Assembly: GCF_000315625.1 (NCBI RefSeq)
Contig: NW_005434621.1
Coordinates: forward strand, 392,246-455,776
DNA from: Guillardia theta CCMP2712
Taxonomy: Eukaryota > Protista > Cryptophyta
Reading direction: 5' to 3'
DNA: 63,531 bases
This document shows positions 1 through 57,057 of this stretch, in pieces. A model generated the notes under the pieces. It saw only the letters and a program-made list of their open reading frames with translations. It made no database searches and was not told the origin of the DNA. Position 1 is the first letter of the stretch. The number at the start of each line of letters is the position of its first letter. The position numbers and the translations under genes are program-made.

Positions 1-205
1 TGAGGTGGGGAGACCAGGTTGCATCGCCCTCATTACCCCTTCAATATGGACGTTGCGCGGGGGATTGGGGATGGCGGAAACGAGAGGAGTTGGCGAGGAG
101 GAGGAGGAGGAGAAGGAGGAGAAGGGAATGTGAGGAGAGGAGAAGGCCTCAGGTCGCTTCTCAAGCATGGACTGAATCATCTATCATCTCGATCACGCTA
201 AGGTG

Positions 206-3200
206 ATGATAAGGAACGCAGCTTTGCATTGGTTTGCCGTGCTGGCACTGTTTTGTCACCTGCCTCACAATCCTGTACATGCATCTGAAGGCTACTCTCT
301 CTCAATTTTAGGTCAGAACGTCTGTGCTGGCTCCACCTTGTACGTACAATACACAGCACCTGTCGGCCATGCACCGAACAACATCATCGTTATGTATCTG
401 AGGGATGGGAATCAAAATTTTGTGTTGACCGGGAGCAATCCGGTCCCATGGAATGCCACAGGTATTTTGGCGGTGGAAACGTACGAGTCGTACGTGAATA
501 ATCTTGTCGTCTTTCGTTACTTTCAAAACTTAACCAGCGTCGATCACGATCATCGTCCTCTCGCGGAAACGCAGACCGAGAACCTTGGTAGCCCGTCCGA
601 TCCCTGCGGGGTCTGCGGGGGAGACGGCAGCACCTGTCGCGGATGTGATGGGATTATCAACAGTGGGAAGCAAGTTGACAAGTGTGGGGTGTGCGGGGGG
701 CAGGATGAGTGTGTGGATTGCCGCGGTGTGCCGTATGGTATGTACAGAACTGACCGTTGCGGACGTTGCGGCGAACCCAGGTACACCTGCTCCGAAGGTC
801 CTAGGAGAGGCTTCCCATGCCATAATGGCGAAGACTGTGGTGGCAAACCGTGCACCACCGATCTTCCCTTCGAGGGGTGGAATCTTTGTGTTGATTGCGG
901 TGGAACGCTGAACGGGAGCCTGACGAGGGACTCGTGCGGTGTGTGTGGAGGGTCAGACGAGAGCTGTATACGAGGATATGTCATCCTCCCTCCCCTCTAT
1001 GACGTTTGTGCTGATAGCCCTCTACTTGTCGACTGGTTGTCACCAGCCGACAGGGCGAAAACTTCGATTCTCGGGTTCGCAATGATTCGTAGCGATGGCT
1101 CGACAGGGCCTCTGCAAGGCTGGGCATTCATGGATCCATCTCAAGCAGGGAGCTCGTCGCCCTACCTCTTCCAAGCGCTACAATCTCCATCTACCTTGCT
1201 GGGGAGCAGCATGCTGTTCCGTAACCAGTCTGATACCAGCGGGTCGATGCTCTTCAATAGGTCCAGCTCGCAGCAGCAGATTTCGAGCTGCATCCCCGGA
1301 AGTTCGGATCAAGATTCGCGATGCCTGAGCTCGCTGGAATTCTTCAGGCCCATGCGGCCAGGGAAATATAGAATGCAAATATTCAGCTCGTCAATGAGCC
1401 CCCAGCGTATTGCTCAAAGCGCTGTCTTCGAAGTGCTTCAGAGACCTGACGAGTGTGGAGTATGTGGAGGGGACGGGGCGAGTTGTCGGGGTTGTGATGG
1501 ACTCATCAACAGTGGGGTTGAATTCGACCAGTGCAATGTGTGCGGGGGGAACAACGCATGTCTTGGATGCGATGGGATCCCTTTTAGTGAACAGGTGGTT
1601 GACATTTGTGGAGAGTGTGGTGGGATGAACGTCTCTTGTACGGGCTGTGATGGTGTAGCGAGATCTGATGGGGGCTTGAAGTACGATTCATGCGGAAATT
1701 GTGGAGGAGAAGACGATTCATGCGCTTTGCCGCCCAAGGTCGGGCTGCTCCCCTACCCAGCTGATTTCGCATGCGGGAACAAAATTGCTTTTTGGTGGAC
1801 AGCACCGTCGAACAAGAGTTCTTCAGACTTTATTGCCCTATGTGAAGGTGGCACACCTCTCCAATACACTCCAGGAGCATGTCTACCTGTCCTTCTGAAC
1901 ATCTCAGGAAGTTATGGTGAAGCCAAAGTCGACCTGCAGTTGTCCCCAAGCACGTATGACTTGCGTTACCTGCAGCACCAGCCTATAACTTCGGACGGGA
2001 ATCACATCCCTTTCGTGGTCAAGTCCTCATTCTCCTTCCTGCTGAAATCTGCGTCAGATCAATCATGCTTGTCTTTGGAAGCTAGAGTGAAAACTGGACA
2101 TCAGGTGTACTGTGCAGGCCAAGAACTGCTGGTCGACTGGACTCTCCCTAACGTCCTCTCGAATCAGTACGTGCAAGGTGCAGTTCTCGGGATTTCAAGT
2201 GAGGAATCGGAGGATCTACCTTGCACATCTCCTTGCTACGAGCAAGTGTCGGGATGCACCATGTGCTATGAAAGAATCTGCGCATTGGGTCAGACTTGTT
2301 CCAACTCAGGTACAGTGGTCGTTCCGGCCACACCCAGTGTCCAGTTCTATGGCTTGTCGACTCCTACACTGGCAGGCAGGTACAGAGCATGCTTCTACAC
2401 TGATCAGACCCTGTTCATGGAGAACTCTCCTCTCGCGTGCTCTGCCCCATTCTGGATCTCCTCGAAAGGACTGGACGTCTGTGGAGTCTGTGCTGGAGAC
2501 GGCCGGTCATGTTTGGGTTGCGATGGCGCTCCTTTCAGTGGAAAGACCTACGATGTCTGCGGAGTTTGTGGTGGAAATGGGAGGAGTTGTCTGGGATGCG
2601 ACGGCATCCCGAACAGCAAGAAAATTGTTGACGCCTGCGGGGTTTGTGGAGGCGACGGCAAGAGCTGCCTGGGATGTGATGGGATTCCATACAGTGACAA
2701 GACTTTCGACTCGTGCGGAATATGTGGAGGTAACGATTCCCACTGCAAAGATCCTTATCAGCTACTTGTACGAGGAACTTGCACTGGAGATGCTGTTGTG
2801 GTGTCCTGGAGGGCACCGTCAAATCACCCTGCTCTATCGCTGAAGGTCAACACTACACTCTTCCCCTGCCTTCTCCGGTGGTATGGTCTTGCTGGCCCTC
2901 TGCCTGGCCAGTCGCCCGACACCTCGCTGTCCTCGTTGAAAGTGGCGCAAGACTTTCCGGCTGGATCTCCAGGATGTGGCGAGCCTTGCACGACGGGTTG
3001 GGCGATCTTTGTTGCGGACACGGACAAGCTGGACCTGTGTGCCGAGCAGAGCTTGAGCTGGACGATCTACTTGGAAGCTGAACGGAGGAGCGCAACCTCT
3101 GTTGTGATGCAGGTGGTGCAGAAGACGAGCATCCGTCAGATAAAGTCGTGCGGAGCTTGTGAGGTTTGGTTCGGGCAGACATGCCCTGTGACGACGACAG

Positions 3201-5751
3201 CAGTACGGATGACTACGACGTCTCGTGCAGCTACGACTTCTCGGCAGTTCACAACCAGCGCTGTGACAAGCACTCCCCTGCCTTCCACCACTCCGATCGA
3301 AACGACTCCGGCGATTCAAACAACTCCCAGTATGAACCTCACGTCGGTGAAAGGATACGTCAAGGTCCATATAGCTGCTGTACACATCGAGATGCACCTG
3401 GAACAGTTCAGCTCAGCCATCAGAGAAGCAGTTGCAAGCCTTGTGGAAGCTGACAGCAACTTCTACCTCCCAAGCTTGCAAGCGACAGTCGATGCTGTGT
3501 GTAACGAGGTTGGCACCTCCTGCGATTGGTTCAATCGGCCAAGCTTGAGGACGATCGAGTCTCACCACGAGAAGTCTTCTGGCCGCATGATCTTGCAGGT
3601 TGGACTTCAGTTTCATCTCTTCTTGTTCGCTGGTGCTCAATTTGTTTCTTGCCAGGCGTCCGAAGATTTGTGCCTAGTTGTCTTCCATCTCATAGTCCCG
3701 TCGGAATACTCCAGCGCTATGGTGAGAGGAGAAGAAATCTGCTGACTTGTATCGTTTCTCTTATCTTTTCTCTCAGAATGTCTTGTTACAGCAACAAGTT
3801 CTTGCCGATCAGATTTCTGTCAGGCTTGTCTCCACGTTAGGAGGGAAAGTGAAGACAGAGATGGCTCCGATGAAAGCGGCTGATTCCGGTGGATCCAATG
3901 CCTTGGCGCTGGCAATTTCTGTCAGCGTTGCCCTTGTTTGCACAGCGTCGATAGTCGCCGTTGTAGTTTACCGATGGCTGGCGACTCGGTCTCCGCTCAA
4001 GGTGAGGAGGAGGAGGAGGAGGAGGAGGAGGTATTTTTCCGCCTGAGATGTTTTGCAGACTGTGAAATCCAAGTTGCGAAGGTTCCACAAGATGGATGAG
4101 GATGAAGGGTTGGAGTTGCCGATCCAGGTGGAGCAGAGTCGGAAGGGAAGCCGCAACCTGATGCCTATCTCTGCAGGTGAAGGTGGAGAAAGGACGCAAC
4201 GGGAATCAGCAGATGGGGAGGGAGAGTGAGGATGGAGTGCCTGTGGAAGACAGTGCTAGCCCTTCGCACGAACGAGGGCACGAGAACGGTCAACGGGAGG
4301 ATTGCGAGGAGGTCGTCTCTGTCGCTCCTAACGGGCAGGGAAGAAAGAGTGAGGAGAAAGCTGATGAGAGCGAGTACCCCGGGCACTCGGATGCGACGGG
4401 CTCCAGCACTCCTCAGACTGTAGAGGTCAGCGGGTCCTCCAAGTCTACGACGACGGATGTCGACAAGACTTCGCAGGAGTCCAGCCTGTCGCCAGACTAC
4501 AACGACCGCATCCTTGCAGAGGACTTCACCCCGAAGCCCCTCCACGTCCCTCGTCGCACTCCCCTCTCCGTCTCCTCCCACATCAGGACTCTGCCCCTGG
4601 GCGAGGACGCGCTGGCAGCGCTGAAGCGGCAGGAAGGGTCAACCCTCGCGTCTGAGGAGGAGCGGGAGCATCTGAAACGAATCGAGAGTCTGTCACTCAA
4701 CGAGTCGATCCGCAAGCCCAAGTACATGATGAGGACCCGGAGCTCCGCTCGGCAGAGGGTTCTGGAGGGATCGACGGTGTCTGTAGAGACTTCGACATGC
4801 CTGAAGGAGTCGGAGAAGACTGTGTGCGAGCAGCAGGGCAACGGGTCGCTTGATGGCATGAAGAAGAATCTCTACAACGTGGCTGTGCAGCCCAACGGAG
4901 TTGTCGATAAGAATGAAGAAGGGAGCGAGGAAAGAGAACGAGGAGAAGGAGAGAGAGGAGGGAGAGGAGATGGCAAAACTGGTGATCGTGTCAAGGAAGA
5001 TTCAGCACCGCGTGCAAATGGACACTGCGAGGAGGTTGAAGGGCTCGATGGCGAGGTGGACAAGGACGAAGAAACGAAGTCAACCATTCAGACGAGCAGC
5101 GACCGTGGCGATGAGAATGCTCCAGTGTGCAATGGAAAGGGAGGAAGAGAGGAAAGTTCTGAGGATGAAGGAGGTGTTAGGCAGGCAGCTGCAGCACCTA
5201 CGGCTGACAACTTGGAAGGGGAGGAAGATGAACGGGAAGGAGACAATGGGCAAGCATGCGAGCTGAAGGAGGAGACTACACGGGGAGCAGGGGACGTTCA
5301 AGGTGGAAAGGATGGAGGGGGAGGGGGAGGGGGAGGGGGAGGAGCGGCAGAGCAGGGCGTTGATCCGTCGGAAGGAGAGCAAGGTGAAGCCCATGGAACG
5401 TCGGGAGCGAGCGGAGGGCCAGAGGGAGGGGACCGCGAAGGTGTTGGGGGGGTGGCTCACACAAAGGCTGAGGACGAAGTTGGAGGAGACCGAGCGGAAG
5501 GGAAAGAGAAGGAGGACAAGGAGGAAGACAAGGAGGAGGAGGCAGAGGATGGGGAAGAGTCAGACCGGAGGAATGCCGACGATGACCAAGTCGTGACGAC
5601 AGAGCGAGGAAGTGAAGAAACGGGACGCAAAGACACCTGCGCAGGAGCAAGTGGAAGAAAAGGAGCAGGAGGAGGAAGAGAAGGGGAAGGAGGAGAAGAA
5701 GAGGATGGAGAGACCCAGCACATTGTCATGTCGCAGGAGGGGACAGGATGA
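206..5751 (+). CDS. Multi-exon type-I transmembrane Cys-rich repeat protein (signal peptide, 12 DxCGxCGG repeats, interleaved beta-sandwich-like modules, Thr-rich stalk, TM, acidic cytoplasmic tail)
   Basis: ORF 203-3745 has a hydrophobic N-terminus (WFAVLALFCHLPHNPVHA-S) and repeated DxCGVCGGDGxSCxGCDG units. It is joined through short GT-AG introns (~3598-3655, ~3722-3776, ~4002-4058, ~4128-4176) to the TM segment ALALAISVSVALVCTASIVAVVVY and to the acidic ORF 4177-5751. Confidence 0.75.
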
Positions 5752-12155: not shown

Positions 12156-14398
<2,243 letters not shown>

Positions 14399-17574: not shown

Positions 17575-19058
17575 GTCTCAACCTTGCCTCGGTTCACGAC
17601 TCGCTCTCCCTAAGACTGCCTGTCCCCGCCCGCAGCTGCCTTCATCGTCCGATCACGGCTTGCCGCACCATTCGCTCTTGCCCTCGTTTGACTAACGGCT
17701 CGGCATGACCTGAGTGGCATACGGTCCGGTCTCCGGTGCCGGGGACCGGGCCGCCGGTTCGGGAGACCGTCCGGTTCGGGGCCGCGGCCCGTACTGCTCT
17801 CCTAGTCACTTGGAACTTCGGGCCGAGTCCTGCGGAACCCGGCCGTGCAGCTAGTTGAGCGTTCGGTTGGGGGCCAAGGGGGTAGTTGCTAGTGTGGTAG
17901 GGGTGGTGGGGCCAGAGTCAAGGAATGATTCGGGGTCATGAAGGTTTGGAAGGGGGTAGGGGTGAATTTACCAGGGTGGTGTGGAGCAGAAGTAGTTTTA
18001 AAATTCTGTCAGGGGGTGCTGTAAGCGGAAATCAAAGGGGATGTTCTGTAGGGGGGTGGATACGTGCAGTAGGGGATCCCTCGGTAAATCCGAAGTGGGG
18101 GTGAGGTAGTAAAATCCGTGGTACGAGGATGCGCGCAAGAAGAATGTGGGGGTGGAGAAATGTGGGTGGGGGTGGGTGGAGAGCAACATAAAAGTTGTAG
18201 TTCGAGGTGTTCTGGGGGGTGGTGTGTTGGGGTAGTCCTGGTCCTTTTTTTTAACGGATCAGGATGGGTAGGGTATTTTTGGAATCCTGGGGGGTGGGTC
18301 AAACAGATAGCACAGGTTTCAGAAAAAGACGGGTGGGGTAGTTTGAAGGTAGGTACATGATGGAGGGTGGGGTCGTTTGAGTTTGGTTTTGGCATGGCTT
18401 TAGTAGTGAGCATGAAGTTGTTCGGCAATGGCGGAGAATACGTGAGGAGGAGGAGGAAAGGAAGGAGAAGATATAGGAAAGTTCAAGGGAGAAGAAGAAG
18501 AATGAGAGAGACAGCATTTGTTTGTTCTTTTATGTATGTGAGTGAGAGTGCGAGTATGAGTGAGAAAACAATTCTGCCGGGGAAACTGGGAGGGTACACG
18601 AAGACAGCGACACATCTAGCTGGGTCGACGTGAATGAGTGAATGGACAGGAAGACAAGAAATTAAAGATGAATACGTCTAGTGTGTACCAGAAGGGGGTT
18701 CCCGAAGGATATGGTAGACCAATTGTTCTTCAAAGAACATTCTTCTCGGAATGTAGAGCAACTGGAGAATGATAGGAGAATGATAGCATAAAGAGAATTG
18801 TAGTTACCCACACGCTGGTTGCTAACTTATGCCAAACAGATCTCCTATACTCCTGATCAGCTCAAGTTTGAATCCCCTGCATGTGCAGCATGCGGAGTTG
18901 TGTAAGCATGCTCCTATGGGGCATGCTTATTACGGTCCATCTCGAGCCATGGGAGCGCAAATAGTGCAGCGTCAATCTGAAGGCGAGCTATCTGTACATG
19001 AACAGGTTTAGTGCGAGAGCAGCAGTCTGTTGACTGTCTGTCCGAAGAACTGCTCGAA

Positions 19059-22000
19059 ATGTCCGAGGAGCCAGAAACCATGAAGGTTGCTGAGTCCCAG
19101 GCGGTTGAAGAGGACAAGGGAGGCGGGGAGCTTCCTGGAATGATACCTCCAACCGAAGACAACACGACTGCCGATGACACGGCAGTTCATGAAGACCGTG
19201 CTAACGCGAACATCGATGGTGATGAGGATAAAGCACTGAGTGGACATGAAACCCCGCCTGAGGCTGCAACTGACAGGTCTGACAACGGAACAGGCACTGG
19301 GGCGCACACTCCTGATACGCAGCCATCAAAGTCTGTCGAACATTCCATGGGGACAGAGAACGATGATGAACAGAAGAAATCTGGGGAGCAGTCTTTGCAA
19401 GACGGCAGCCATGTTGCGGGAGAAGTGAACGTGACAGAAAGCTTAGCACCGGTTGGATCTGCGTCAACATCGCCTCCTGAGGGCAGTGAAGTGCAAACTG
19501 CCGCATCTACAGACACACCTTCTGATGAAACATCAAAAACACATGAAGCATCAGAGGGAAGCAAGGCTTCTGATCAAGTAGAGCGTTTGAACACTAACAA
19601 TGGGGAGATCGCGTCGGAAATCAAGGCAGAAGCGCTACCTCCTGGCGCCAATGGTACAGAGAAACAGCAGAACATAACGAATCAAGGAGAAGAAATCAAG
19701 CAGACCGTCCCCAACGGTCATGATGGAGTGAACTCGAATGGTGATCAAGGCAATGGTACTGATTTGCAGCATACGAATGGAAACCTAACGCACAGAGAAG
19801 GTGGCAACGGATATTCGTCGAAAGAGGCGATTGATAAAGTGAATGGAGGCAAACAAAGTGGCAAGGCTTCCCGGCTCGTGAAGTTGATCCAAACAAGCAG
19901 CGCAGATTCTATGGGTGATTTGTTGGACGAGGATGATGGATCGATGAAGTTGAAGCGACGTTCTTCGTTGTTCGCTGGTCTCATGTCAAGGGGTGCGGGC
20001 ATACGACGAAGGTCTTCAAACTTCTCTATTGATTCAATGTCCAGCGTGGCCACGAAATTGAGTACGATTCAAACTATAGCATGGTTGAAAGTCAAGGCCA
20101 AGAAAGCTACTCGCGTCAAGCGGAAGTCGTGCTTGAAGCATGAGTCAGTACTTCAGAGTGAAAGCAACAGCAACATCGCTAAGATCCAGCGAGTCCGTTT
20201 TTCATTACCAAAAAAGAAGACCGTGACTTCAAAATCCATCTTCTTTGATCCGAACCATATCTGGATGGGAAGATGGCATATGTTCTTTGTGTTGCCCCTA
20301 GCCTATGAAATCTGGGCTGGAGGTTTCAGGTTGGCGTTTGCTGATCCAGATTCGAATACTTGGATCTTTGATCTCGATTTGACTTGCGATTTGCTCTTCA
20401 TCGTGGATGCTGCCATCTACTTGAACACAATGATCATGGTCGGAGATGAGAGCCGTCTCCAAGGTCGCAATGAACATGCTATGTATATCAAGGACAGAAC
20501 TATCATTGCTAAGAAGTACTTTCTTCATGTTTTCCCCTATCAGCTTCTTCCAGGTATTGTGTTCTTAAGCATCTCAAAACCATCAACACACATAGGGGTT
20601 TGGTGGGTCATAATGTTTCTTAGACTTCTCCCAAGGGCCTTGCGCTTATATCGATACTTCCGATCCATGGAGATCAATCTCGAAGTGTCTGTCAACCAGC
20701 TTCAACTCGTAAAATTTAGTCTCGTCATCGCCATGGCAAGTCACTGGATTGGCTCTCTGTATTTTTGGGCTGCCAGGATTCATCAGGTGGAAGAGACATG
20801 GTTGTATGAGCTGGATACAATCTTTCCTTTGTATTCGATGAACTCAAGCACCATAGCACAGAACTACCTCTTGTGCCTCTACAAAGGATTCGACGGATTG
20901 TCTTCCATAGGATACATCCCCATTGTCCCAAACAACAGCTTCGAAATGGTTTTGAGTGTTTTGGTGATGTACAACTCCATCTTGATCTCCGCCTACATCC
21001 TTGGGAGTCTGTTCCACTACCTCCTAGTGTCTCAAAAAGATCCTCTCACTGAGGCCCACAAGAAGAGAATGACAGATGTGATTGCGTTCGCTGAGGCTCG
21101 TCGACTCGCCCCAGCTGTAAGGAAGAAGCTGATTCAGCACTTTGAGTTCCAATACAAGAAGAGCGTGCAGCGAAAGGCGTCAGCCTCTCTCAAGTTGCCG
21201 CGATCTCTAGAGGTGAAGGTTGCAAACTCAAGGTTCAGACCGACAGTTGAGAAGTGCTGCAAGCCGGGAGGCATCTTCTATCACTGCAACGCACAGTTCC
21301 TGAACAACCTGGTGACACACCTTCGACCTGTCTTCTTGATGCCCGGAGATCAGTTCATTCGAGCGTCGGAAATGGTTCTCGAGCTTTCTTTTGTGATTGA
21401 TGGGCATGCAGAAGTTGTGGATGAGGATGAGGTCAAGCGTATCATCCGCTCAGACATCGATGATCCTTCAGTGATTGGAGATGTCTCTTTCTTCCTTGGA
21501 GTGCAGCAGCAGTACTCGGTTCGCGCTCCCCTCGACACGGACATTGAGCTCCTCGTTCTCAGCAAAGAGTCCGGAGAGGAGCTGTTTCGAAACTATCCTG
21601 AACAGCAGGAGCTTGTGAGCAACAACATCTTAGCAAGTTTCAACCTTGACAAGTTTGGGAATGACAAGTCTGACGAGAAGAGTGCTGAGGATGGGGAGGA
21701 GGATCCCGAATACTTGTTCATGAGAAATCTGATCAGAGACACTGTGAAGAGAAGACAGGAGGAGTCATTCTTAGCGCTGAGCTATGCTGCCACTGCCGGA
21801 GACCTTGAGGAGGTGAGGAGAATGCTCCGCAAGGGAGTAAGTGTCAACTCAACGAACTATGACGGCAAGACGATCATGCACATGGCAGCGTCACAAGGAA
21901 ACTATCGAGTAGTTGAGCTTCTGCTGGAGGAAGGAGCTGAGAAGAATCAGAAAGACAGGTGGGGAAATACTCCCCTCCAAGATGCTGTGAACGCGAATCA

Positions 22001-25000
22001 AGGGCCTGTTATTCAGCTCCTCGTACAGTGGAAGTCAGAGCTCAATACCGAGAACTCTTCGGATAGATTGTGCAACGCTGCGAGTATAGGCGATCTCGAC
22101 ACGCTGAAGCTGATGCTTGAGCATGGGCTCAGCCCAAACGTCGGCAACTGTGACCAGCGAACGCCATTGCACCTTGCTTCCGCTGAGGGACACAACAAGC
22201 TCGTCGAGTACATCCTGAGCAAAGGAGGAGATGTGAATGCCCATGACAGGTGAGCGAGTAGGAGAGCTTGAGGACCAAGTGACCTGGTATTGCAGGTGGG
22301 GGAGGACTCCCTTGCAGGATGCGGTAGCTGCGGGGCATGTTTCGATAGCAGAAGAGATCTACACGAGAGGAGGAAACATGTCAGAGACCACAGGGCCTGT
22401 CGAAATTTGCAACGCTGCCACGGAAGGAGACGTGCGGCATCTCCGCTTGCTGCATAGATGCGGAGTTGACCCAGGTGAGGCTGGCTCGCTCCGACTCTTG
22501 TTGAGGCCGCTGCTGACACAAGTTCTCTCAGACACTGGCAACTACGACCAACGCTGCCCTCTGCACCTTGCAGCTTCGAAGGGACGATTGTTAGCGGTGA
22601 ACTTCTTGCTGGGCGTCAGTGCCAACCCGAACGTGAAGGACAGATGGGGAGGAACACCATTGGATGATTGTGTTCGTGGTGGAACAACCCGCCACCTGAT
22701 GTGTGCGAAGTTGCTGCAGTCCATGGGTGGTAAGCTTGGAGTGCTTGCAGACACGGAAGAGGGAAAGCGAATGCTGCAGGAAGTTGCTGCGTTGGACATG
22801 GAGGAAGTGAGAGACGTCGTGAAAGATTTGATCGCCAAAGGGTTGAACAACAAGAAACCCTTGAGGCCGACGGTCCAGCAGTTCCTGGTTGCGCGCGAGG
22901 CATCTCTCGCCCTCCTGAACCCCGTGGTAGAGATGACTGGGTTGTTCCAAAATGTCGGGAACCTCCTGCTGGATAACCAGACACCCTTGCAGCGAGTCTA
23001 TGAAGAGCTCAAGTCAGGCAACTCGGTCGTTGCGAAGATCACAGACAAGGTGAACGACTGTAAGCTCGGGCCGTTGGAGACTGGAGTGCATGCAGTGATT
23101 GAGATCAAACAAGAGGGCGCCGAGAGCCAGACGACGGAGTTCTACCAGAAGCTCGAGAGCGGGCTGGAGACATCGCAGTTTATTCAGAGCTTCGTCGATC
23201 AAGACACGCTGGCGCTCTACGACGAGCTGGACCTTATCTTAGCCAACCTGCAGAAGAAGGAGAGAGACAGCAAATTCGGGAAGCTCAGCCTGGCCAAGGA
23301 CTTCAACAAGTGCCTGATGAACCTCAGTAAGGTCGAGGACATGTGGTGTGCGCTTACCTCTGCCTTCCACGCTGTTGGCCAGCACTCGACGCACCTCAGC
23401 AGCACTCGATCGGGATATGCCCGAGGCGTGTACGTCGATGCCGAGACCTTCCCCGAGTTGCTGAAGAGAATGCAGCTGGACCTGAGCCCCAAGGAGACCA
23501 GAGAGTTGTTCATGAACGCCGTGTCTTCCTTGAACTCGAAGAAGGATGGCGGCCCGCAGACTCAGATTACTTTGCTCACTCCCGAGATTTTGCTGTGCAA
23601 GTGCGAGGACTTCAGGGAGCTGGTGCGGAAGGAGTGCGATGAGAACTCTGTCAAGCTATCGACGCTTGTGCGATCGCACGTTCTGAGGAGCCTCTCGTTT
23701 GCTCATATCCAGTATCTCGCCTGGAGATGCAAGAAGATAGTTCTGGAGGAAGGAGGAAAGATCAAGCCTACTGAGCCTTGCATGTACCTAGTGAGGAAGG
23801 GGAGGGTTCGTGGGATGTTCCACAATGATGGGAAGGACATTTGCCTTCGCTTGGAGTACGGGCCCAACACGATCTTCGGAGAAGTTTGGCTCCTAACAGG
23901 TTTCGCCCCCGTCCTCATGATCAGAGCTCAGACTCAGTGCGAGCTGATCCAAGTGAGCAAGCGCGACCTCGCCGTCATCCTCCAGGTGAGGTTCAGCTGA
24001 CCCGATACCATGACGCTGAGATTGTCTTGACAGGCCAAGGCCCAGCTTATCGTTGTGCTGGCGAATGCTCTGACGAAGAACTCCGAGTTCGACACGTTTG
24101 AGAAGGAGATCTTGAGAGACTCGATCAACCACAAGCTGGCGCAGGACCCGAGGGACTCTGAGCCTGGGGTAGAAATATCGGAGTTGGAGCTCAACACCAA
24201 GGTGCTGATGGACAGCATCCATGAGCACTTCGAGCCGAATCGGACGGAGAACGTGAACTTTATCGCGCTGATCGTCTCGGTCTGGCGAGGGATCGCAAAG
24301 ATCAACAACAGGCGCAGCAAGTACTACCACTGCGAAGACGTTGCCAACATGAAGCAGCTTGTGGACCAGGGCATTCACGTGATTGAGAGCGCATGGGACT
24401 TGTTTGCGGCAGGTCTACCGACCGTCGAGTACGACGAGGTAGCTGGTATCAAGGACTACCTGGGAGAGGTGAGAAAGAGGCATCGTGCGCTCCAAGCTAC
24501 CCCTGACGAGCCGCAGGTGGGACAAAACTTCTTCGCGACGACGTTCAACCCTCGAGTCTGCCCCAAGACGATGGACATGAGTGACTGGTTCACCCGCTGG
24601 ACTCGATACATCGACGACTCTGAGTCGACGCAGAACGATACGTTCACAAAGTCGCAGTTCGCTTCCTTCCGCATGAGGCTTCCCGTCCGTGAGAACAGCC
24701 AGGAGCTGGAGCTGGAGGAGGGGAACGAGGAGAAGGTCGGGGATTCAACAGTGCTCTCCATCGCCCAGGTGGATCCCAGCACATACCTGGAGAAGTTGAA
24801 GGAGATCACGGTCTCGATCTTCCATCAGTCCATCACCCCCTGGCTCCTCAACGACGATCTCGCCAACGCCTACGAGCCAACCTTCACCGCCATCGTCGGC
24901 AACACCATGAAGCCCATGACCCGAGCTCAGGTTCTCTTGACAAGCATCCCAGGACCTGTGAGTCTGACTTGCTCGCCAGGTCCCTGCGTTCTTGTCGCTG

Positions 25001-28000
25001 CTCCTCCTCGACTTCCACAGCGAGATCTCCAACGTGCATGTGGATGAGTTCATGCAGGTGAAGCAGTTCGATGCTCCCTGAGCCCCTCGTGACTCTCTTG
25101 CCAGACGTTCTCCCCTGACGGCAGGAAGGCGACTTCCATCTCGTTCCCGGACATTGAGCGAGTGCTCTACGACAAGAACGCGACAGTCCTGAGGGCTGAC
25201 CGTCTCTTCATCGGCGATTGGCGCTCGGCCCTGAACCCCCTCTCTACCCCCGTGCGGGCTTGGAGGACTTTACAGCAGTTCTGCGCGGTGTTGTACTTCT
25301 TGCAGATCCCAGCTTGGATCTCTTTCCAGCCATACTCGTCGATGACGACTCCCTCCCTCCTGATCTTCGACCTCCTCCTCGACATCTGCGTCTTCACCAA
25401 CCTGTTCGTATGCTTCAACGTCGCCTACATGAACAAACAGTGAGTCGCCGACTGAGGGTGCCAGTCGTCACTGACCTTGACTGACTGCAGGTCGCGATGG
25501 GTCACCGAAAGAACCAAGATTGCCCGGCACTACCTGTCTCACGACTTCTGGCTCGACTTGATCTCCGCCGCTCCCCTCGACTGGTTCGGGTGGTTGAGTG
25601 GTGCGAGCATCGAGATGTGCAGCTGGTTCCGGTTGCCCAAGATGCTGTACGTGATCAGCGTCAACAAGGACTCCAAGATGAGCCTCCTCAAGTGGAACAT
25701 GACCTACCCGCACTTCAAGCTCGCCCTCTACATCTTCGGTGTCCTCCACGTAACCTCCTGCTTGTGGTTCTTGCTGGGCCGGCGGGGAGCCGGAGAGCTG
25801 CTGGGCGAAGCCACCTGGTCAGTGCTAGATGAGTGATGAGTGACGTGCTGACGTTCTTCTCAGGTATTCCCCAGCTGACGTTGCAGTAAGGCGGGCAAGC
25901 AGCATACATCTCAGCGGGGTCATCGACTACTCCGGGTACGGCATGCTCTACTCGAACCATTCGGGGACATGGGACCGCTACCTGCTGTCGCTCTACTGGA
26001 TCTCCAGCACGGTCTCAGCTACCGGAGTGATCGGGGACATGTTTCCTAAGAACTACGGGGAGATCGCCTACACCATCTTCCTGCTCTGCCTCAACCTAAC
26101 GCTCTTCAACTACGTCATCGGGGAGATCTCAGCTAGCGTCCTCAAGGGAGACGAGAAGCTGGTGAAGGCGAGGGAGGAGTTGGGAGCCGTCGAGAGCTAC
26201 CTGCAGGGGTTCGACCTGCCCAACGAGCTCAAGGTGGAGATAAGGAGGTACTTCGAGGGGACGTCAGGAGGAACAACGTTCATCAGCGCGTCTGAGATCT
26301 TCGACTCCATCTCCCACTCTCTGAGGTTGGAGATCTCCTCCAACATGACACGCGAGTGCCTGGAGAACGTGTCGCTCTTCCAAGGCTGCAGTCCCCAGCT
26401 CAAAGCCAACATCCAGGGGCTGCTGAGGGAAGCTCACTTCGGCTCCGACGAGTACCTGTACCAGTCGAACATGATGGCGCATGAGATGTACTTTGTCGTC
26501 AACGGCTTCGTCGATCAGCTCGTGCAGGACTCGGAAGGGTTCTCAATCCATGACAAGTCTGTCGGGCCTGGCGGAAGCGTCGGCGACCTCTCCTTCTTCT
26601 TCGGTGTCCGCCACATCAACGCCGCTCGCGCCAGCAGCCGCTCGGGCGCCATCTGCCTGCGACTGGTGCGATCGCAGATCATGCCGGTGCTCAAGGCGTA
26701 CCCCGATGACGAGGAGATCGTCGCACAGAACGCGCTCAAACAGTTCCAGCTGACGAAACATGCTCGCAGTGCAGCAGGAACGAGCCGGTACGCGAAGAGC
26801 AATGCAAGCTTTGGCACACACGGGACGCAACAAGGGGATCAGTTGCAGGAGGACGAGGCGGCCAAGGAAAAGAAGGACGACGAAGAAGTGAGCCTGCCGA
26901 CTGACTACGAGCACACGGCCAAGGACGACAACAACTTCGACGCCATCATCCTGTCCAACATTGAGCAGAAGGTGGCTGACCTGAACCAGCGGAGGAAGGC
27001 TGAGCACATCGCCGCCTTCTGTGGGGCTGCAGCTCGTGGGGAGCTGGAGAAGATGCAGAGGTTCTTTCGGATCGGCCTCCATGTCGACGAGACGGACGCC
27101 AACGGCAGGACGGCGCTGCACGTCGCAAGTTGCGAAGGTCAGATGGAGGCGGTGAAGCTGCTGCTGGCCCACCGCGCTCTCGCCTCCATCAAGGACAAGT
27201 ACCACAACACGGCGCTCAACGACGCCGTCCGGCACTGCCAGGATGCCGTTGCTGCGACACTCAGGGCTCAGGGTCAGAGCTTGAGCTTCCCTGGACAAGA
27301 GGGAGGGATCCTGATGTGCAAGTACGCGTCTGCGGGCGACAAGCTGCAGATCCTGCGGATGCTGGCGAACGGCATCGAGATCAACGTGAGCAACTACGAC
27401 TCGAGGACCGCCCTCCACCTGGCAGCGAGTCAGGGCAACACGGCAGTGGTGGAGTACCTGCTGGAGAAGAAGGCGGAGGTGAACGTCAAGGACAGGATGG
27501 GAGGAACGCCGCTCGCCGATGCGCTGCGCCATGGCCACGTGCAGATCCAGTCGCTGCTGAGGAGCGCTGGGGCTCAGCTGCTGGGGATGGACACGGCAGT
27601 CGCCATGTGCAACGCGGCGGCGGTAGGAGACGTGGACACGGTCCAGGCGCTGATCCGGAACGGAGCGAATCCGGACGCCGCGGACATGGACAAGAGGACG
27701 GCACTTCATCTCGCTGCTTCCAACGGGGAGGTGACGGTCCTGGACTTCCTGCTGCGATGCACCGACCGCAACATCAACGTGAACCCTGTGGACGACCTCG
27801 GAGGAACGCCGCTGGAGGACGCCTACCGCCATGACCAGCCCGTCGCTATCGCCATGCTCGAGGCGGCCGGCGGGCTGCGCATGGGAGACTCGCAGCTGCT
27901 GGCGATGGGGGAGCAGCAGAAGAAGGACGTGGAGGAGTTCCAGAAGAACGACAGGCTGCCGAGGGTGACGGAGCTGGTGGAGCAGAGCACCGAGATGAAG

Positions 28001-28624
28001 ATCCAGATCTGGGTGAGGGGGCGATGCGGCAAGCTGATCCCCAACAAGCTCAAGGTCATCGCGTCCTCGACGGAGCAGATGCTGATGGAGATGAAGATGC
28101 TGATGGTGAAGGTGCAGCAGCTGTGGGACAACATCGACGATATCATGTCGGGGAAGGAGACCCCAGCTGACAAGGTGAAGGACATCAAGCCCACCCAGAG
28201 CTTCCTCTTCAGCCAGCTCAGCGGCAAGATCGAGCTGGAGGAGGTGCGGCAGATGGCCGTCAACTTCCTGCAGACCCTCTGGTCGTGGCACGAGCCGGTG
28301 AATCAGATGCTGGGCATCATGTCGGAAGACCTCCCCTCCAACCGCGTCGTCCGCCTCACCTCCGCCGAGTATCGCAGGCAAGCTGATCGCGTGCTGGAGC
28401 TTTTCAAGAGGCTGGTCGTGTCGACTCAATTCTTCGACCAGAACCTCCGAGAGATGCTCAAGGTACTCGACACTTCCTCCTGCTCCTTCCACCTGCCCTT
28501 CCCCCTGATCCTCCTGCTCTTCCTCCTGCAGTCCCCTGCCCCTGTTGCTCCTGCTCGTCTGACACCCCAGCAGGTACTCAACATCGTGATCGATGACATG
28601 AATACCGTAACTGAGGAATACTAG
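19059..28624 (+). CDS. Two-module (2x6TM) CNBD-family cation channel with ankyrin repeats (tandem plant Shaker/AKT-like architecture)
   Basis: Module I has 6TM (S4 LRLLPRALRLYRYFR, pore LSSIGYIPIVPNN), C-linker, CNBD and 9 ANK. The linker carries an extra CNBD. Module II has 6TM (pore TVSATGVIGDMFPKN), C-linker, CNBD and 9 ANK. The ORFs join in frame via short introns (e.g. 22250-22295, 23987-24033, ~24931-24979, ~25058-25105, ~25440-25490). Confidence 0.85.
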
Positions 28625-28841
28625 CGCTCTCCTTGTACTCTATGGTGTATCATGTATGAAAGCATGTTCTTGTCTCATCGCTCTGCTCGAGGCATGTAGA
28701 GGAACATCAAGGCAAACTCCCTCCATCGCTCGCACAGCTAGTGTTCTTGCAAGTCCAAGTGAAGCTTATCAGAGTTTCTCAGATTACAATTTAAGAGTCA
28801 TGAACTAGTCGAGCAGCTTGAGGACTTCTGACCTCTGGCCC

Positions 28842-37738: not shown

Positions 37739-39848
37739 TTACTCGTCCATGGGCTCCCCATCTAGAGGCTCTCCGTCCAACGGCTCTCCGTCCAATGGCT
37801 CTCCGTCCAACGGCTCCCCGTCCAACGGCTCCCCGTCCAACGGCTCTCCGTCCAATGGCTCTCCGTCCAATGGCTCTCCGTCCAACGGCTCTCCGTCCAA
37901 CGGCTCTCCGTCCAATGGCTCCCCGTCGATCGCCTTATCCGCTTCTACTTTGCTGAGGCTCTCGGCCGCGTTCTTAGCTGGACCCTTGGCGGAGGGGTTG
38001 CCGAGGAAGGTATCCTCCAGCTCCTGGATCATCTCGTTGGGGTAGATGCACCAGACCTCCCACACCCGCAGCACACGCGACACCTTCTCCTTCATCGCCT
38101 CTGCCGTCATCCTGCCAACGTCGGGTGACCTGAGCTTCTCTCCGAGAGCCTCGAAGATGTGCGGCATCGCCTTCTCGAAGCAGGTGCGGAACAAGGAAGC
38201 TTTCTTGACGGCGGCTGAGCTGTTGTGGAGGATGTCCGAGACGAGGAAGAGGCGAGCGATCTTGGTGGGAATCGGCGTCTTGAGGATGGTCAGCGACTGA
38301 GTGATGATGTCGACGATATCCTGAGCTGCCTCAGCTCGACGGATCGACCAGTACATGGCGTCTCCGATCTGCTCTCGCTCTGCCGACATGTTCCGAAGCA
38401 TCGACTGGAGCTCCTCCACCTCACTGTCTGTCAGAGCAGCCCCGCTGTTGCCATGGCCAGGAGACCTCGACCGGCTGCGAGATTTCTTCCTCTCCAGGGG
38501 AGCAGGAGCAGACTCAAGGTCCCCAGGAGGCGTCCACACCACTCCTCCGAGAAACATCTGGAAGGGCATCCGGCGCCACTCAGTCAGCGAGTCGCCTTGA
38601 GCGAGCGAGAAGACTTTCCACTTGTAGTAGACCCCGTTCCGAGAGTCCAAGTCCCACAAGAACTCAAAGAGCGGGTTTTCTCTCTCTCGGTTCAGGATCG
38701 CCTTCTCAAACTCGTGGCCCTCCCTCACCACGTACTCCGCCATCTTGTCGATCATCTGCCGCACTTCGTTCGACTTTGGGAATCTCACCGTAACCTCTCC
38801 CGTCCTCCTGAACATGACCGGCTCCTCCTTCTCGCCAGGCTTCATCGCGTAGCAGGGGACAGCTCCCTTTGACATTGCCTTCCCCCATCCTATCTTCATC
38901 TCCAGACCGAAGAACTCCTTCCCGTTCAGACTGTCTTTGGCTGCCTCTGCACTCTTTCTGTCCATCATGTTCACAAAGCCACAGTTTCGCTGTCTCGATT
39001 TCTCCTCGTCCGTCCGAGGCCACATGATCTTGACAGACGCAATGGGCCCGTACTTCCCAAACTCCTTCATCAGCATCTCCTCAGAGATCTGAAGCGCTGT
39101 CAGCCCAGCATCGCTCGGTCACAAGTACCTGAGGATGAAGGTTGCCAACGTATAGGTTCGTTGTGTTTTCATCTCCATCATCAAACGAACCCTGCGGCAT
39201 GTCCTTGTCCCGGAAGTGCGAGGCGATCAGTTCCTCAGTCTTCTGCGCCTGCGAACTATCACTCCTCCTCCTCCTCCTCCTCCTCCTCCTCCTCCTCCTC
39301 CTCTTGCACCTTTGATGCCGGAGTGGTTCCTCGCAGTTCCTTCATCAGCTCTTCGATTCCTCGCTTCTTGTTCTGGGCCTTGTTGATTCCCTGCCTACTG
39401 GTGAGCTGCCTAACACATTGAGGTACAGGAGTTTCACTTTGATCTCCGTCGGTGACTTCTTGGAGTCGAAAGTCTGCTTCTCCTCGCGATAGGTCTCATG
39501 CTTTGGCACCATGCTGTAAACCTCTCCCGGTCTGACTTGCATGCCCGCATTCCCACCCAGCGGGTTCGACCCTTTCTGAACCACCTCACCTCTAACGAAG
39601 CCCTTGGGCTTTGCCGCTCCATCAGTCTCGAAAGAGGCGACGAAATCTTCGAAGACCTTGGCGGCTTCCTCTTCTTCCTGCCTCTTCCTTGCCTCTTGCT
39701 CTTCCTTGTGCTTTTGGAAACGGGACTTGGTTTGATTGCCGATTTGGAATCCCTTTATTTTGTCTTGGGTGATGGAATCTTTGGATCCTTTGGCGAGCTT
39801 TGAGCTATCCAGCCCCCACGGCAGCTCTGGTTTCTCATCATCCTTCAT
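37739..39848 (-). CDS. U2SURP: U2 snRNP-associated SURP motif protein (SR140: RRM, SURP, CID)
   Basis: TTNLYVGNLHP, FGKYGPIASVKIMWPRTDEEKSRQRNCGFV (RRM); IDKMAEYVVREGHEFEKAILNRERENPLFEFL (SURP); KIARLFLVSDILHNS (CID). Confidence 0.95.
37749..37928 (-). repeat. 12 x 15-bp coding tandem repeat (DGEPL)
   Basis: GGCTC(T/C)CCGTCCAA(C/T) units with third-position variation. Confidence 0.95.
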
Positions 39849-48732: not shown

Positions 48733-51700
48733 ATGGATGGTCAGACGTTCTGCTCAGTTGCAAGGCAGGGCATCAGCAAGCTTCAGAAGGCGATCCACGA
48801 GCATAAGAAGCAGAAGGAGGCTGAAAACATCAGCGGCGCGTGCGAGCGCTTCTTGCTCGACCTTGACAAACTCTCTGAACCCTCCAACTCCAACGATCCT
48901 GTCAATCTCCAAGAAAACTTCGACTATGCCGCTCTCTTCGTTCCTTTCCTCGCCGCCCTTGAGCTTCGCAACCCCAAGCTGACCGAGTCTGCGCTTGACT
49001 CACTGCACGAGTTCATTGCGCATGGATACCTCAAGGACCTGAACCTCCGCACAGACCCGCCTCGAAGCCTCGCGGAAGTTCTTGTAGAGAATGTGTGTGG
49101 ATGCAGCAGCATAGAAGACGAGACCGTGCAGATGCAAGTCATCCGAGTCCTCCAGACCTCTGTCATGTGCGAGCCCAGCATTGTGCATGGCGCCAACCTA
49201 CTTCAGAGCGTTCGGACTTGTTTCAATCTGCACCTGGGGAGCAGCAGCCAAGCGAATCAGACGGCTGCCAAGGCTGCGCTGTCGCGAATGATCAACGCGA
49301 TGATGAACCGACTAGAGGGCCTCCCTGCCTCAGCATCCCGACACGTCGAGGACCGTGGGATTCCTGACCTGCCGGCCTCTGTCCCCAGCACCCCCGAGCC
49401 TGCCAAGAGCTCTCAAGCCGGCGACTTTCCTGCGGAGCACCCGGAGATGCCTGCCCCGAGCCCCAACGGGTCCCACATGAACGGATCCGCTGCACATACG
49501 AAGACGCCCGAAGCGGAGAAAGTCAGCGAAGAGACAGACTTCAAGTCTGTTGAAGAGCGAGACGTGTATGAAGTTTTCCACAGACTCTGCAGACTGTCGA
49601 TGAAGTATGAAGTAGTGGACAGCTGGGTGAAGCCAGACGAGACGATGAATATGCAGAGCAAGATGCTCTCGCTCGAACTTCTTCTCTCCATGCTCGATCA
49701 GAGTGGTCCCAAGTTCAAAGGTTAGATGCTCGTTGCTGTGAGTCGTGCCGCTGATCCTGTTTGCTTGTCCAGGTTCCGCAAAGTTCATAACTTGCATCAA
49801 GCAGCAGCTCTGCATGTCTCTCTTGAAGAACGGAGTGTCTCCTGCTCCGCGAGTCTTCAAGGCAGCGCTGCAAGTGTTCGTGACGTTGATCTTGAACTTC
49901 AAGACGCACCTCAAACAGGAGATCGGAGTTTTCTTCACGACCATCTTCTTGAGGATATTGGAATCTCCTCACTCTACCTACCAACAGAAGACCATGGTCC
50001 TCCAACTCCTTCACAGCATCTTCCGAGACCCGCAGACCGTCGTGGATGTCTTTGTAAACTACGACTGCGATTTAAAGCAGGTCACCTGTCCTCCCTCCCT
50101 CCCTCCATCCATCCATCCATCCATCCATCCCTCCTTCCATCCATCCCTCCCTCCCTCCCTCCCTCCCTCCCTCCCTCCCTCCCTCCCTCCCTCCTGTGCC
50201 TAACGTCCCACAGGTTGACATCTTCGCCAAGATGCTAAACCAGCTTACCCGGACGGTTCAATCGGGAAGTGGCGCTTCCAAAGACACCGGTTACTTTACG
50301 CCCGAGCAGGTTCATCTCCCTCCCTCGCCACATCAATATCATTCGTTTTTCCTTGTTCAACTACCTCTACTCCCCTGTTTCGCTCCCTTCCCTTTCTCTC
50401 CCTCTCTTCTCCCTTCCCTTGCTCCCTCCCCCTCTTTCCAACCCATCCCATCTCCCTCTCTCTCCTTCTTCTCCTTGTCTTCTCCTCCTCTGTCTGGCTT
50501 GACTGCGTCTTTCTCGTCCTCATGTCTGACGATCCTCCAGGAGTTTCAGCTGCGATCGCGGGGTACGGACGCGCTCGTGTCAATGGTGGAGTCGCTGATG
50601 AGGTCGGAGGTCTGCTGGGGTTCTGCTGGAGCTGACCCGCAAGCAGGTTCAGCAAGCTCGTCGAGAAGGACTTCATCTGGCTGGAGACGGGGGAGATTCT
50701 TCCCAGGTCCATGGCCAAGAACGAGAGCAGCGAGGGAGACCTGGAGAGCTCCGTAGACTCGAGGGTGGGAGGAGAGAGCGAAGACGTGGACCCCGTGCTG
50801 AAGCAGAAGGAGCACAAGACGCAGCTGCAGCAGGGGATCAAGGCGTTCAACCTCAAGCCCAAGAAGGGAATCGAGATCCTCACGTCCTCCGGTCACCTCA
50901 AGAAGGAGCCGCAAGCCATCGCCGCCTGGTTTCACAACCAGCCGAGCTTGGACAAGAAGGCGATCGGAGAGTACATGGGGGAGCCGGACGAGTTCAACAA
51001 GGCGGTGCTGTACGCCTACGTCGACATGATGTCCTTCGCCAACATGACCATCGACGAGGCTCTTCGCCACTTCCTCTCGGGTTTCTGGCTGCCCGGGGAA
51101 GCGCAAAAGATCGACCGCATGATGGAGAAGTTCGCGGAGAGATTCTGCAAGGACACCGACTCCTTCTCCAACGCCGACACTGCATACGTGCTCGCCTACT
51201 CCATCATCATGCTCAACACTGACGCGCACAGCCCCAAGATCGCTAAGAAGATGACCAAGGAAGAGTTCGTGCGCAACAACCGAGGGATCAACGACGGGAT
51301 GGACCTGCCACCTGAGTTCCTGGAAGGAATCTACGATCGGATAGTGGCCAGCGGCTTCAAAGTGAAGGAGGACGAAGACGTTGCCACGTCAATGTCCACG
51401 GACTCCGAGAAGTCAGTGCATGAAAGGTACCGAGCTGAAGCCCAGCAGCTCATGTCAACAGCTCAGGGGCTGCTGAAGAAGGCGGCGGAGCAGAGCTCTG
51501 ATCACTTCTTGATCTCCAACAAGTCGGAGCACGTCATCTCGATGCTCGAGATCAGCTGGGCTCCCATGCTCGCGGCCTTCAGTGTGGTCATGGAGGAGTC
51601 AACGGACAACGGGCTGATCGCACAGTGTCTCAAGGGCATGACGGGAGCCATCACTCTCCTCAGCATCTTCAGGCTCCACAGCCAGCGCGACGCGTTCGTC

Positions 51701-56310: not shown

Positions 56311-56344
<34 letters not shown>

Positions 56345-56468
56345 GGCTGATGCTGCTGCTGCTGTTGCTGCTCCTGCTGCTGCTCCTGCTGCTGTGGCTG
56401 CTGCTGTTGTGGCTGATGCTGCTCGTGCTGCTGCTCGTAATGATGTTGCTTCTGTAGCTGGTGGTATG

Positions 56469-56520
<52 letters not shown>

Positions 56521-57057
56521 GTGCTGTTGCTGTTGCTGTTGCTGCAAGAGGATCGGTCTGTTCTGGTGATTTATCATCGATTGTGACGGGAGATTGTTTT
56601 GCATGTGTGTGAGATCGCCATGGTTTCTCTGTTGCTGTAAGTGCAATGGCCTGATGGGAGAGTTGGAAGCAGCATGTTGAAGATGACTGGCATCAGCTCC
56701 TCTCGACCGCGCGTTATATTCTTCATGGTCAGCCTCCTCCAGCAAGTTCCCTCCACGATAGACTGTCGGCAACTCTGAAGGCGATTTGTGGGATGTACAA
56801 GGGGAGGAAATGTTTGATGTGGAGGAAGCGAGCGGAGAGGAGGGGATGTGGCTGGGTCTCCTCAGGCCTTCAGACCTCAAGCTGGTATGTGCCATGCTCC
56901 CTGCGGATGAGAACAAAGACTCGGAGGGCTCGTCTCTCGTAGAAGAATCTCTAACGCTGTGATGATTGACATGGCTGGAGCCTTTGAATCTTTTTGCCTG
57001 ATTTAGTGCCAACTCAATGGCTGCCATTTCTTCCGCATCGACGAACTCAAGCTCCAT
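54012..57057 (-). CDS. SMARCAL1: SMARCAL1/HARP-like SNF2-family annealing helicase (one HARP domain; apparent 1-nt frameshift in the assembly)
   Basis: HARP domain [26 protein letters not shown]; [86 protein letters not shown]. The 3' end is uncertain. Confidence 0.9.

Follow-up and report, generated by a model that had tools for sequence, protein, structure and literature searches.

A Guillardia theta gene encoding two diverged Shaker-type subunits in a single ankyrin-bearing chain, a probable asymmetric cation channel

Introduction

Channels of the voltage-gated superfamily usually consist either of four separate subunits or of four repeats fused in one chain, and the two-repeat forms, the two-pore channels (TPCs), are rare intermediates for reasoning on the origin of fused channels. 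A TPC chain carries two repeats of six transmembrane segments (6TM) and forms a dimer with a two-fold symmetric pore, two filters and unequal voltage sensors; in plant TPC1 there is also an EF-hand-type domain in the linker between the repeats. The subject of this report is a gene on the forward strand of a 63,531-nucleotide stretch of the cryptophyte Guillardia theta CCMP2712 (NCBI RefSeq assembly GCF_000315625.1, contig NW_005434621.1, positions 392,246 to 455,776), the whole of which is referred to as the window. The gene encodes two diverged subunits of the Shaker type in one protein, each with a cyclic-nucleotide-binding domain (CNBD) as well as ankyrin repeats, and it is probable that the product is a dimeric, asymmetric cation channel.

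Two-repeat tandem CNBD channels were described in oomycetes and dinoflagellates in 2020 (PMC7576140), with TVGYG-like filters, repeats less than 30% identical to each other, and first and second repeats in separate clades. The Guillardia protein resembles them in having two diverged 6TM-CNBD repeats per chain that fall into repeat-specific clades. However, PMC7576140 makes no mention of ankyrin domains or of Guillardia, and Goniomonas is the one cryptophyte in it. A first-pass annotation of the window, made from the letters alone, had suggested that the gene might stand for a new class of channel. That suggestion has to be narrowed, as the general kind is known and only the ankyrin-bearing lineage looks undescribed: a full-text literature search found no description of it, and the sole paper on tandem CNBD channels found was PMC7576140. 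Orthologues are already present in public databases as single long protein models.

Gene structure and transcript

The interval 18982-28677 is one nuclear gene transcribed into one polyadenylated mRNA. On the forward strand between 19011 and 28624 there are six long open reading frames (ORFs) in changing frames, and a public transcript contig of the Joint Genome Institute (JGI), of 9199 nt and polyadenylated, is 100% identical to 18982-28677 once nine GT-AG introns have been removed, with one mismatch, in the 2610-nt block 25863-28472. This contig (L001) ends in a run of A without genomic counterpart, which places the poly(A) site directly after 28677, and the 5' end of the transcript lies at 18982 or upstream of it. 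It is the sole contig encoding P0001, a public protein of 3013 aa that was matched over two stretches when the core of the first module was used as a phmmer query against 1.84 billion representative proteins, and it holds a single ORF of 9042 nt. The spliced translation of the genomic sequence is free of stops, and residues 8-3020 of it are identical to P0001; the difference in length arises at the start, where the earliest in-frame ATG (19059) stands behind a TAG at 19008 and the public model begins at the second methionine (19080). The figure of about 3000 residues in the first-pass annotation was thus close to the 3020 aa of the spliced coding sequence (CDS).

Splicing was also seen in other public data. 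Positions 21000-26999 of the window were compared with four public runs, of which X1 and X5 (probable RNA) were available as contigs, X10 is DNA and X19 is RNA in the form of raw reads. Eight GT..AG intervals of 46-57 nt are skipped by the contigs of X1 and X5 and retained in the DNA run X10, and a 3801-nt contig of X1 is spliced from 21897 to 26089, that is from the ankyrin domain of module I through the linker to the pore of module II. Sampled words were contained at 0.76-0.98 in public runs from the year 2011, with later runs mostly at about 0.84, the level that a spliced copy would give. The first-pass annotation had joined the ORFs in frame into one gene by short GT-AG introns, and both the X1 and X5 contigs and L001 agree with it; the three joints that it quoted (ILQ/AKAQ, RAQ/VPAF and DEFMQ/TFSP) are exactly introns 3, 5 and 6, but it overlooked the in-frame introns at 22475-22531 and 24469-24516 and the intron near the 3' end. 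With the exception of intron 9, the introns measure 46-57 nt, and for the most part a GTGAG donor is paired with a CAG acceptor. Four of the nine have a length divisible by three (57, 48, 48 and 111 nt), and three of these four lack an in-frame stop, so that they are read through as ORF and are hidden from raw ORF calls. The boundary of intron 9 is ambiguous by 2 nt because of the repeated AGGTACTC.

A quite different account would have two neighbouring paralogous channel genes at this locus, with the cDNA a product of read-through or of faulty assembly, and separate 6TM-CNBD-ankyrin subunits that form ordinary heterotetramers. Such an account can draw on the depth of the X5 contigs, which is 1670-3389 over the linker and module II against 997 over module I, on the blindness of contig-level data to the starts and ends of transcripts, and on the stand-alone genes of the first-repeat type in other algae (e.g. 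902-aa proteins). It is nevertheless extremely unlikely, given that the 770-aa linker is free of stops throughout, that introns 3-8 (23986-25863), in the linker or at its edges, are spliced in frame, and that the cDNA has a single poly(A) end. Moreover, the fusion of a first repeat followed by a second is kept in independent transcriptomes and genomes from at least five algal groups, and the second repeat was not found alone, the two apparent cases, P0167 and P0171, appearing truncated. Polyadenylation or a new transcription start between 23900 and 25200 had been named in the first-pass annotation as the sign of two genes, and neither occurs in the assemblies, which as contigs cannot show starts or ends. 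The single-gene structure is therefore the one used below, and the coordinates of its parts are collected in Table 1.

Architecture of the two modules

A search of the gene's ORFs against Pfam returned three cNMP_binding matches, many ankyrin matches (E down to 1e-38) and weak Ion_trans matches. For both cores an alignment with SKOR or GORK begins at S1 and continues over the C-linker and the CNBD, the 6TM, S4 and pore-loop features of the superfamily and those of the C-linker-CNBD unit being present. The layout of 6TM, CNBD and nine ankyrin repeats proposed for each half in the first-pass annotation is borne out by direct reading, which gives nine repeats in three triplets in either module, and by collinear BLASTP. 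The two modules can be aligned collinearly along 779 columns, ankyrin triplets included, with 27% identity (E 2e-72). The alignment indicates, as had been supposed, that the whole subunit was duplicated, long ago.

The two halves have diverged in the parts that sense voltage and line the pore. The S4 segment of module I carries five arginines (20622-20663), whereas that of module II is charge-poor, with three K/R. The pore filter of module I is SSIGYIP (20901-20921), aligned to TVGYGD of SKOR and AKT1, and that of module II is SATGVIGD (26015-26038), with one extra residue relative to TVGYGD. Since the two filters differ, a heteromeric pore would be expected, as the first-pass annotation had proposed. 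The phosphate-binding cassette of module I, GVQQQYSVRA, resembles the PQPYTVR of plant Shaker channels, and the cassette of module II, GVRHINAARA, has an R/K-H motif that recurs in the second repeat of those relatives whose sequences were read.

It has to be asked whether these domains bind cyclic nucleotides. The Arg-Ser/Thr pair of cyclic-nucleotide binders is replaced by Q-Q in module I, by H-I in module II and, in a third CNBD located in the linker, by P-V, so that none of the three domains has the cassette of cyclic-nucleotide-gated channels in the strict sense. In the absence of Arg-Ser/Thr from all three CNBDs, classical gating by cAMP or cGMP would be unlikely, and the domains are more likely to be structural or regulatory modules, as they are in plant Shaker and KCNH channels. 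The alternative is a genuine K+-selective tandem channel gated by cyclic nucleotides, a two-repeat counterpart of CNGK with three working nucleotide sites per chain. Three CNBD folds are indeed present, the one in the linker scoring above the Pfam cut-off, the conserved R/K-H motif in the cassette of the second repeat suggests a retained ligand site, and G-Y is kept in the filter of the first. We consider this alternative unlikely in view of the three substituted cassettes, of the lack of GYG in either filter and, family-wide, in the second repeat, and of the position of four-repeat CNGK-like proteins in a different clade.

The linker and the terminal regions

Between the modules lies a cytosolic linker of about 770 aa. 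Its first part (aa 1196-1487) matches no Pfam family at E<=1, and there is likewise no Pfam match in the N-terminal region (aa 1-390). The idea of a domain common to the two post-ankyrin segments was dropped, as Jackhmmer queries with the first linker segment and with the C-terminal tail did not match each other's segment.

A third CNBD in the linker had been noticed in the first-pass annotation, and Pfam, AlphaFold and Foldseek all recover it. Its Pfam score is 39.8 bits against a curated cut-off of 27.5, it is modelled at a predicted local distance difference test score (pLDDT) of about 90, and its Foldseek matches are to isolated CNBDs, e.g. 1u12 (TM-score 0.77). Alignment with 5v4s gives its cassette as GFAPVLMIRA, without Arg-Ser/Thr. 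The domain is confined to a cryptophyte-like clade.

Both the whole linker (766 aa) and its distal part (residues 1702-1957) were modelled, the latter separately because the CNBD dominated the Foldseek matches of the whole. The distal model contains two helix-loop-helix lobes, with pLDDT of about 60-78 in lobe A and 81-95 in most of lobe B, and all 50 of its 50 best Foldseek matches are EF-hand proteins of the calmodulin or centrin type or calmodulin fusion constructs, with E-values that are weak (0.009-0.09). In two stramenopile relatives, P0163 and the Chrysophaeum protein P0168, true Pfam EF-hands occur at the same position of the linker, just upstream of the second core; in the Guillardia linker there is no Pfam EF-hand match (E<=1). 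The EF-hand-like helices of the first-pass annotation resemble a calmodulin-type fold in the model and are not recognised by Pfam as an EF-hand, and it can be suggested with moderate confidence that the region is a calmodulin-like domain that has lost the consensus of its Ca2+ loops. Towards the C-terminus of P0168, a protein of 4039 aa, there is in addition a weak match to the RGS domain, whose 22.9 bits fall slightly short of the cut-off.

Relation to named channels

When the modules were searched as single sequences against solved structures, the best matches of module I were SKOR (1.5e-26) and then SthK, GORK and KAT3, and those of module II were AKT1, GORK and SKOR (about 1e-22). Family profiles of both repeats placed GORK and SKOR at the top (262-276 bits), with KAT1, KAT3 and AKT1 next (208-241 bits); among animal channels KCNH2 did best, with no more than 195 bits for the repeat-1 profile and 237 for that of repeat 2, and lower scores were obtained for HCN and CNG channels. 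Since SKOR, GORK and AKT1 are the top solved relatives of both halves, the AKT-like character given to them in the first-pass annotation is supported, and judging by these matches AKT/plant-Shaker-like is a fair label for either.

The likeness to plant Shaker channels (SKOR, GORK, AKT1, KAT1) lies in the order of S1-S6, C-linker, CNBD-homology and ankyrin domains within each module, and in the cassette of the first repeat, where the motif Q-Q/P-Y-S/T-V-R-A matches the PQPYTVR of SKOR. There are several differences. The Guillardia chain holds two subunits, whereas a plant Shaker chain holds one and assembles as a tetramer; its filters, as given above, depart from TxGYGD; and it has nine ankyrin repeats per module, an extra CNBD in the linker and a calmodulin-like region. 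Plant channels also have a C-terminal KHA domain, but neither the tail (aa 2790-3013 of P0001) nor the linker behind the first ankyrin domain has a Pfam match to KHA or to any other family at E<=1.

The TPCs (TPC1 and TPC2) offer a different comparison. They share with the Guillardia protein two 6TM repeats per chain and, in the linker, a domain that in the Guillardia protein is putatively of the EF-hand type; by analogy that protein would be expected to dimerise as well. The Guillardia repeats are nonetheless of the CNBD family and Shaker-like, with C-linker, CNBD and ankyrin domains that TPCs lack, and the Ca2+ ligands of its linker domain are not conserved. No TPC was among the 60 best rows listed for any of the four solved-structure searches, in which the best relatives were all of the CNBD family, and by this measure the protein does not appear to be homologous to TPCs at the family level. 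Sperm CNGK is alike in that repeats of the CNBD-channel type are concatenated in a single chain, but it has four of them and no ankyrin, and the four-repeat proteins among the matches form a separate clade.

Family distribution and phylogeny

The gene belongs to a family of at least 20 proteins, 2272-4039 aa in length, with two cores 1000-1500 residues apart. In every two-core protein, module I is the best match of the first core and module II that of the second. Members with a named source come from Hanusia phi, Rhodelphis marinus, Diacronema lutheri, Cymbomonas tetramitiformis, Tetraselmis striata, Nannochloropsis and Chrysophaeum taylorii, and proteins without a source name from metagenomes and transcriptomes also belong here. 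The ankyrin-bearing tandem family thus extends across at least five algal groups (cryptophytes, a haptophyte, green algae, Rhodelphis and ochrophytes). The closest orthologue, from Hanusia phi, is 83-89% identical. The Nannochloropsis member is annotated as 'potassium channel skor-like', and the others as 'hypothetical' or 'CNBD-containing'.

A tree of 101 repeats was computed with IQ-TREE under LG+C20 in a short search, from a set assembled without plant Shakers and dinoflagellate tandem members. All second repeats form one clade (Shimodaira-Hasegawa-like approximate likelihood ratio test, SH-aLRT, 99), and all first repeats, together with single-module or fragmentary relatives, form another (SH-aLRT 100), which answers the comparison of module I with module II that had been proposed in the first-pass annotation. 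The only single-module members of the repeat-2 clade are P0167 and P0171, which both appear to be truncated at the N-terminus, P0167 beginning inside an ankyrin domain; apart from these, repeat 2 was not found alone among the sequences gathered. Relatives of the repeat-1 type that stand alone include 902-aa proteins, present on numerous 20-30 kb contigs, as well as proteins from Cymbomonas and from the streptophyte alga Mesostigma. When plant Shakers were sought with module I plus its ankyrin domain and with a 22-sequence repeat-1 profile, all relatives returned were of algal or metagenomic origin, the index being flooded by ankyrin words.

Several features of the two Guillardia modules hold for the family as a whole. 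GYG is absent from repeat 2 throughout and kept in some first repeats, and the cassettes are of the R/K-H type in repeat 2 and of the plant-Shaker-like type Q/P-P-Y-T-V-R in repeat 1. Conservation of the pore helix, S5 and S6 extends over distant phyla for repeat 1 and repeat 2 alike, and in the filter region there are a conserved glycine and flanking YW/LY motifs.

Tandem channels of the oomycete type were also among the matches (P0141 of Albugo laibachii, a bicosoecid, Platysulcus and Diphylleia). Those of Albugo, the bicosoecid and Platysulcus (1250-1960 aa) cluster with four-repeat channels in a clade (SH-aLRT 96) separate from the ankyrin-bearing family. Forcing the second repeats of both tandem types together cost 368 log-likelihood units, with p of about 1e-98 in the approximately unbiased test; the group tested was named after the tree had been inspected, and the margin is very large. 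These sequence comparisons show that the ankyrin-bearing tandem lineage arose by a duplication separate from that of the oomycete type.

There is probably a second tandem gene of the ankyrin-bearing family in the Guillardia genome. P0151, a Guillardia theta protein of 3028 aa (MMETSP/UniRef), is 100% identical to the product of the present gene until about residue 893, beyond which identity is 27-89% per 100-residue window, dropping to 13% in the last one, which is short and gappy. The second part of P0151 is matched at 83% identity by P0155, a JGI model. Either the assembly of P0151 is a chimera that includes a paralogue, or P0151 is itself a paralogue with a shared (converted) 5' half. It was rejected as independent full-length evidence for the gene, as identity is lost past about residue 893.

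Proposed assembly and mechanism

How the protein would assemble, conduct, select and gate can be inferred from its parts and by analogy. Two chains would pair, as those of two-pore channels do, and their pore domains would alternate I-II-I-II round one pore as a pseudo-tetramer, above a cytosolic ring formed by two kinds of C-linker/CNBD-homology domain with the ankyrin domains flanking it. Because neither filter is TxGYGD and the two differ, a pore with two-fold symmetry and without strict K+ selectivity is expected; it might be a non-selective or Ca2+-permeable path for cations, which is a guess. Module I, with its arginine-rich S4, would be the main voltage sensor. The linker CNBD and the calmodulin-like domain are candidate regulatory inserts.

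It might be argued instead that the protein conducts nothing and serves as a voltage- or ligand-sensing scaffold on which 18 ankyrin repeats dock partners. Both filters are degenerate, about 2400 of the 3020 residues are cytosolic, a very large mass, and the S4 of module II is poor in charge, all of which would suit a scaffold. Yet the conservation of each repeat's pore helix, S5 and S6 among distant phyla, the retention of the filter-region glycine with its flanking YW/LY motifs, and the alignment of the 6TM and C-linker architecture end to end with working channels make it very unlikely.

A number of observations weigh against the proposal of a single asymmetric channel. The depth of the X5 contigs varies about 3.4-fold: it is 997 in module I, reaches its maximum of 3389 in the linker contig and declines again further 3'. 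There may be an extra internal promoter giving a minor isoform of module II only, since Logan contigs cannot reveal where transcripts start or end. The RNA run X19 placed one read on 21000-26999, with about 6% of the run read, and expression in that sample appears low. The Ion_trans match and two of the three cNMP_binding matches fall below the curated cut-offs of Pfam; the arginine in the cassette of module II stands one position ahead of the canonical cassette arginine, so that on sequence that domain may yet bind a ligand; and the calmodulin-like assignment depends on the weak Foldseek E-values mentioned above and on a model with a mean pLDDT of 65. With these points taken into account, a dimeric, asymmetric cation channel encoded by one gene is still held to be the probable reading.

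Feature coordinates and genomic surroundings

The G+C content of the window is 52-60%, apart from 61001-62000, where it is 0.32 against 0.52-0.60 elsewhere. The neighbouring ORFs identified by Pfam are those of an ordinary nuclear context (Table 1), and three others, at 203-3742 (+, 1180 aa), 4177-5748 (+, 524 aa) and 12159-13328 (-, 390 aa), have no Pfam match at E<=0.001. Opposite the ankyrin region of module II there is an antisense ORF (26543-28492, -) of 649 aa, rich in Arg, His and Leu, which was rejected as a gene for want of support; the G+C richness of the coding strand most probably accounts for it.

Table 1. Positions in the window of the tandem channel gene, its introns and domains, and of neighbouring ORFs
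Feature	Positions	Strand	Details and basis
mRNA (transcribed region)	18982..28677	+	cDNA contig L001, ten blocks
CDS	19059..28624	+	10 exons, 9063 nt, 3020 aa
Intron 1	22250..22295	+	46 nt, GT..AG, within module I ankyrin repeat 6; spliced in X1, X5 and L001
Intron 2	22475..22531	+	57 nt, in frame; spliced in X1/X5 and L001
Intron 3	23986..24033	+	48 nt, at end of linker CNBD; spliced in X1/X5 and L001
Intron 4	24469..24516	+	48 nt, in frame; spliced in X1/X5 and L001
Intron 5	24931..24979	+	49 nt; spliced in X1/X5 and L001
Intron 6	25058..25104	+	47 nt; spliced in X1/X5 and L001
Intron 7	25440..25490	+	51 nt, between module II S2 and S3; spliced in X1/X5 and L001
Intron 8	25818..25863	+	46 nt, behind module II S5; spliced in X1/X5 and L001
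Intron 9	28463..28573	+	111 nt, in frame; absent from L001
N-terminal low-complexity cytosolic region, aa 1-390	19059..20228	+	Conserved only in near-identical P0151
Module I core S1-S6, aa 400-665	20256..21053	+	SKOR alignment S1-S6, hydropathy
Module I C-linker and CNBD-homology domain, aa 666-870	21054..21668	+	Pfam cNMP_binding, SKOR alignment
Module I ankyrin domain, aa 900-1195	21756..22746	+	Nine repeats in three triplets; Pfam Ank families, E down to 4.5e-37
Linker part 1, aa 1196-1487	22747..23622	+	Predicted helical; conserved mainly in cryptophyte-like clade
Third (linker) CNBD, aa 1488-1612	23623..24045	+	Pfam cNMP_binding, E 4.4e-10
Putative calmodulin-like region, lobes aa 1711-1786 and 1840-1952	24340..25209	+	Disordered insert between lobes; AlphaFold, Foldseek; just ahead of module II
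Module II core S1-S6, aa 1965-2235	25246..26155	+	Whole-core GORK alignment, also AKT1
Module II C-linker and CNBD-homology domain, aa 2236-2427	26156..26731	+	Pfam E 1.1e-5 (below curated cut-off), AKT1 alignment
Module II ankyrin domain, aa 2515-2810	26993..27880	+	Nine repeats in three triplets; Pfam Ank_2, E 3.3e-38; collinear with module I ankyrin domain
C-terminal tail, aa 2811-3020	27881..28621	+	Conserved only in cryptophyte-like clade
SURP-CID-RRM protein ORF	37742-39076	-	Pfam
Sec7/BIG-type ARF-GEF ORF	50711-53956	+	Pfam
HARP/SNF2 (SMARCAL1-like) ORF	55642-57057	-	Pfam

Evolutionary reading and significance

A wider reading of the family can be put forward tentatively, although it is rather doubtful. 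The 2 x (6TM-CNBD-homology-ankyrin) form would be ancient, predating the split of cryptophytes, haptophytes, ochrophytes and Archaeplastida, with repeat 2 obligate to it and repeat 1 belonging to the lineage of the Shaker-like channels that stand alone in green and streptophyte algae, because the single-module proteins of Cymbomonas and Mesostigma nest in the repeat-1 clade. The tandem form would then be a cation channel regulated by Ca2+ or voltage and not selective for K+, convergent on plant TPC1 with its two repeats and EF-hand linker. Were this true, the Shaker K+ channels of plants would be relatives of, or escapees from, the first half of the tandem.

The gene shows that the CNBD/plant-Shaker branch of the superfamily also produced a stable two-repeat form, by a duplication separate from that in oomycetes, and this form has been retained over much of algal diversity with the order of its two specialised halves constant. 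The Guillardia protein is predicted to be a natural, hard-wired 2+2 heteromer, with two different filters, unequal voltage sensors and two types of CNBD-homology/ankyrin ring, and as such it would suit the study of ion selection by asymmetric pores and of the part that ankyrin-CNBD rings play in controlling gating. The tandem family may also bear on the origin of plant K+ channels.

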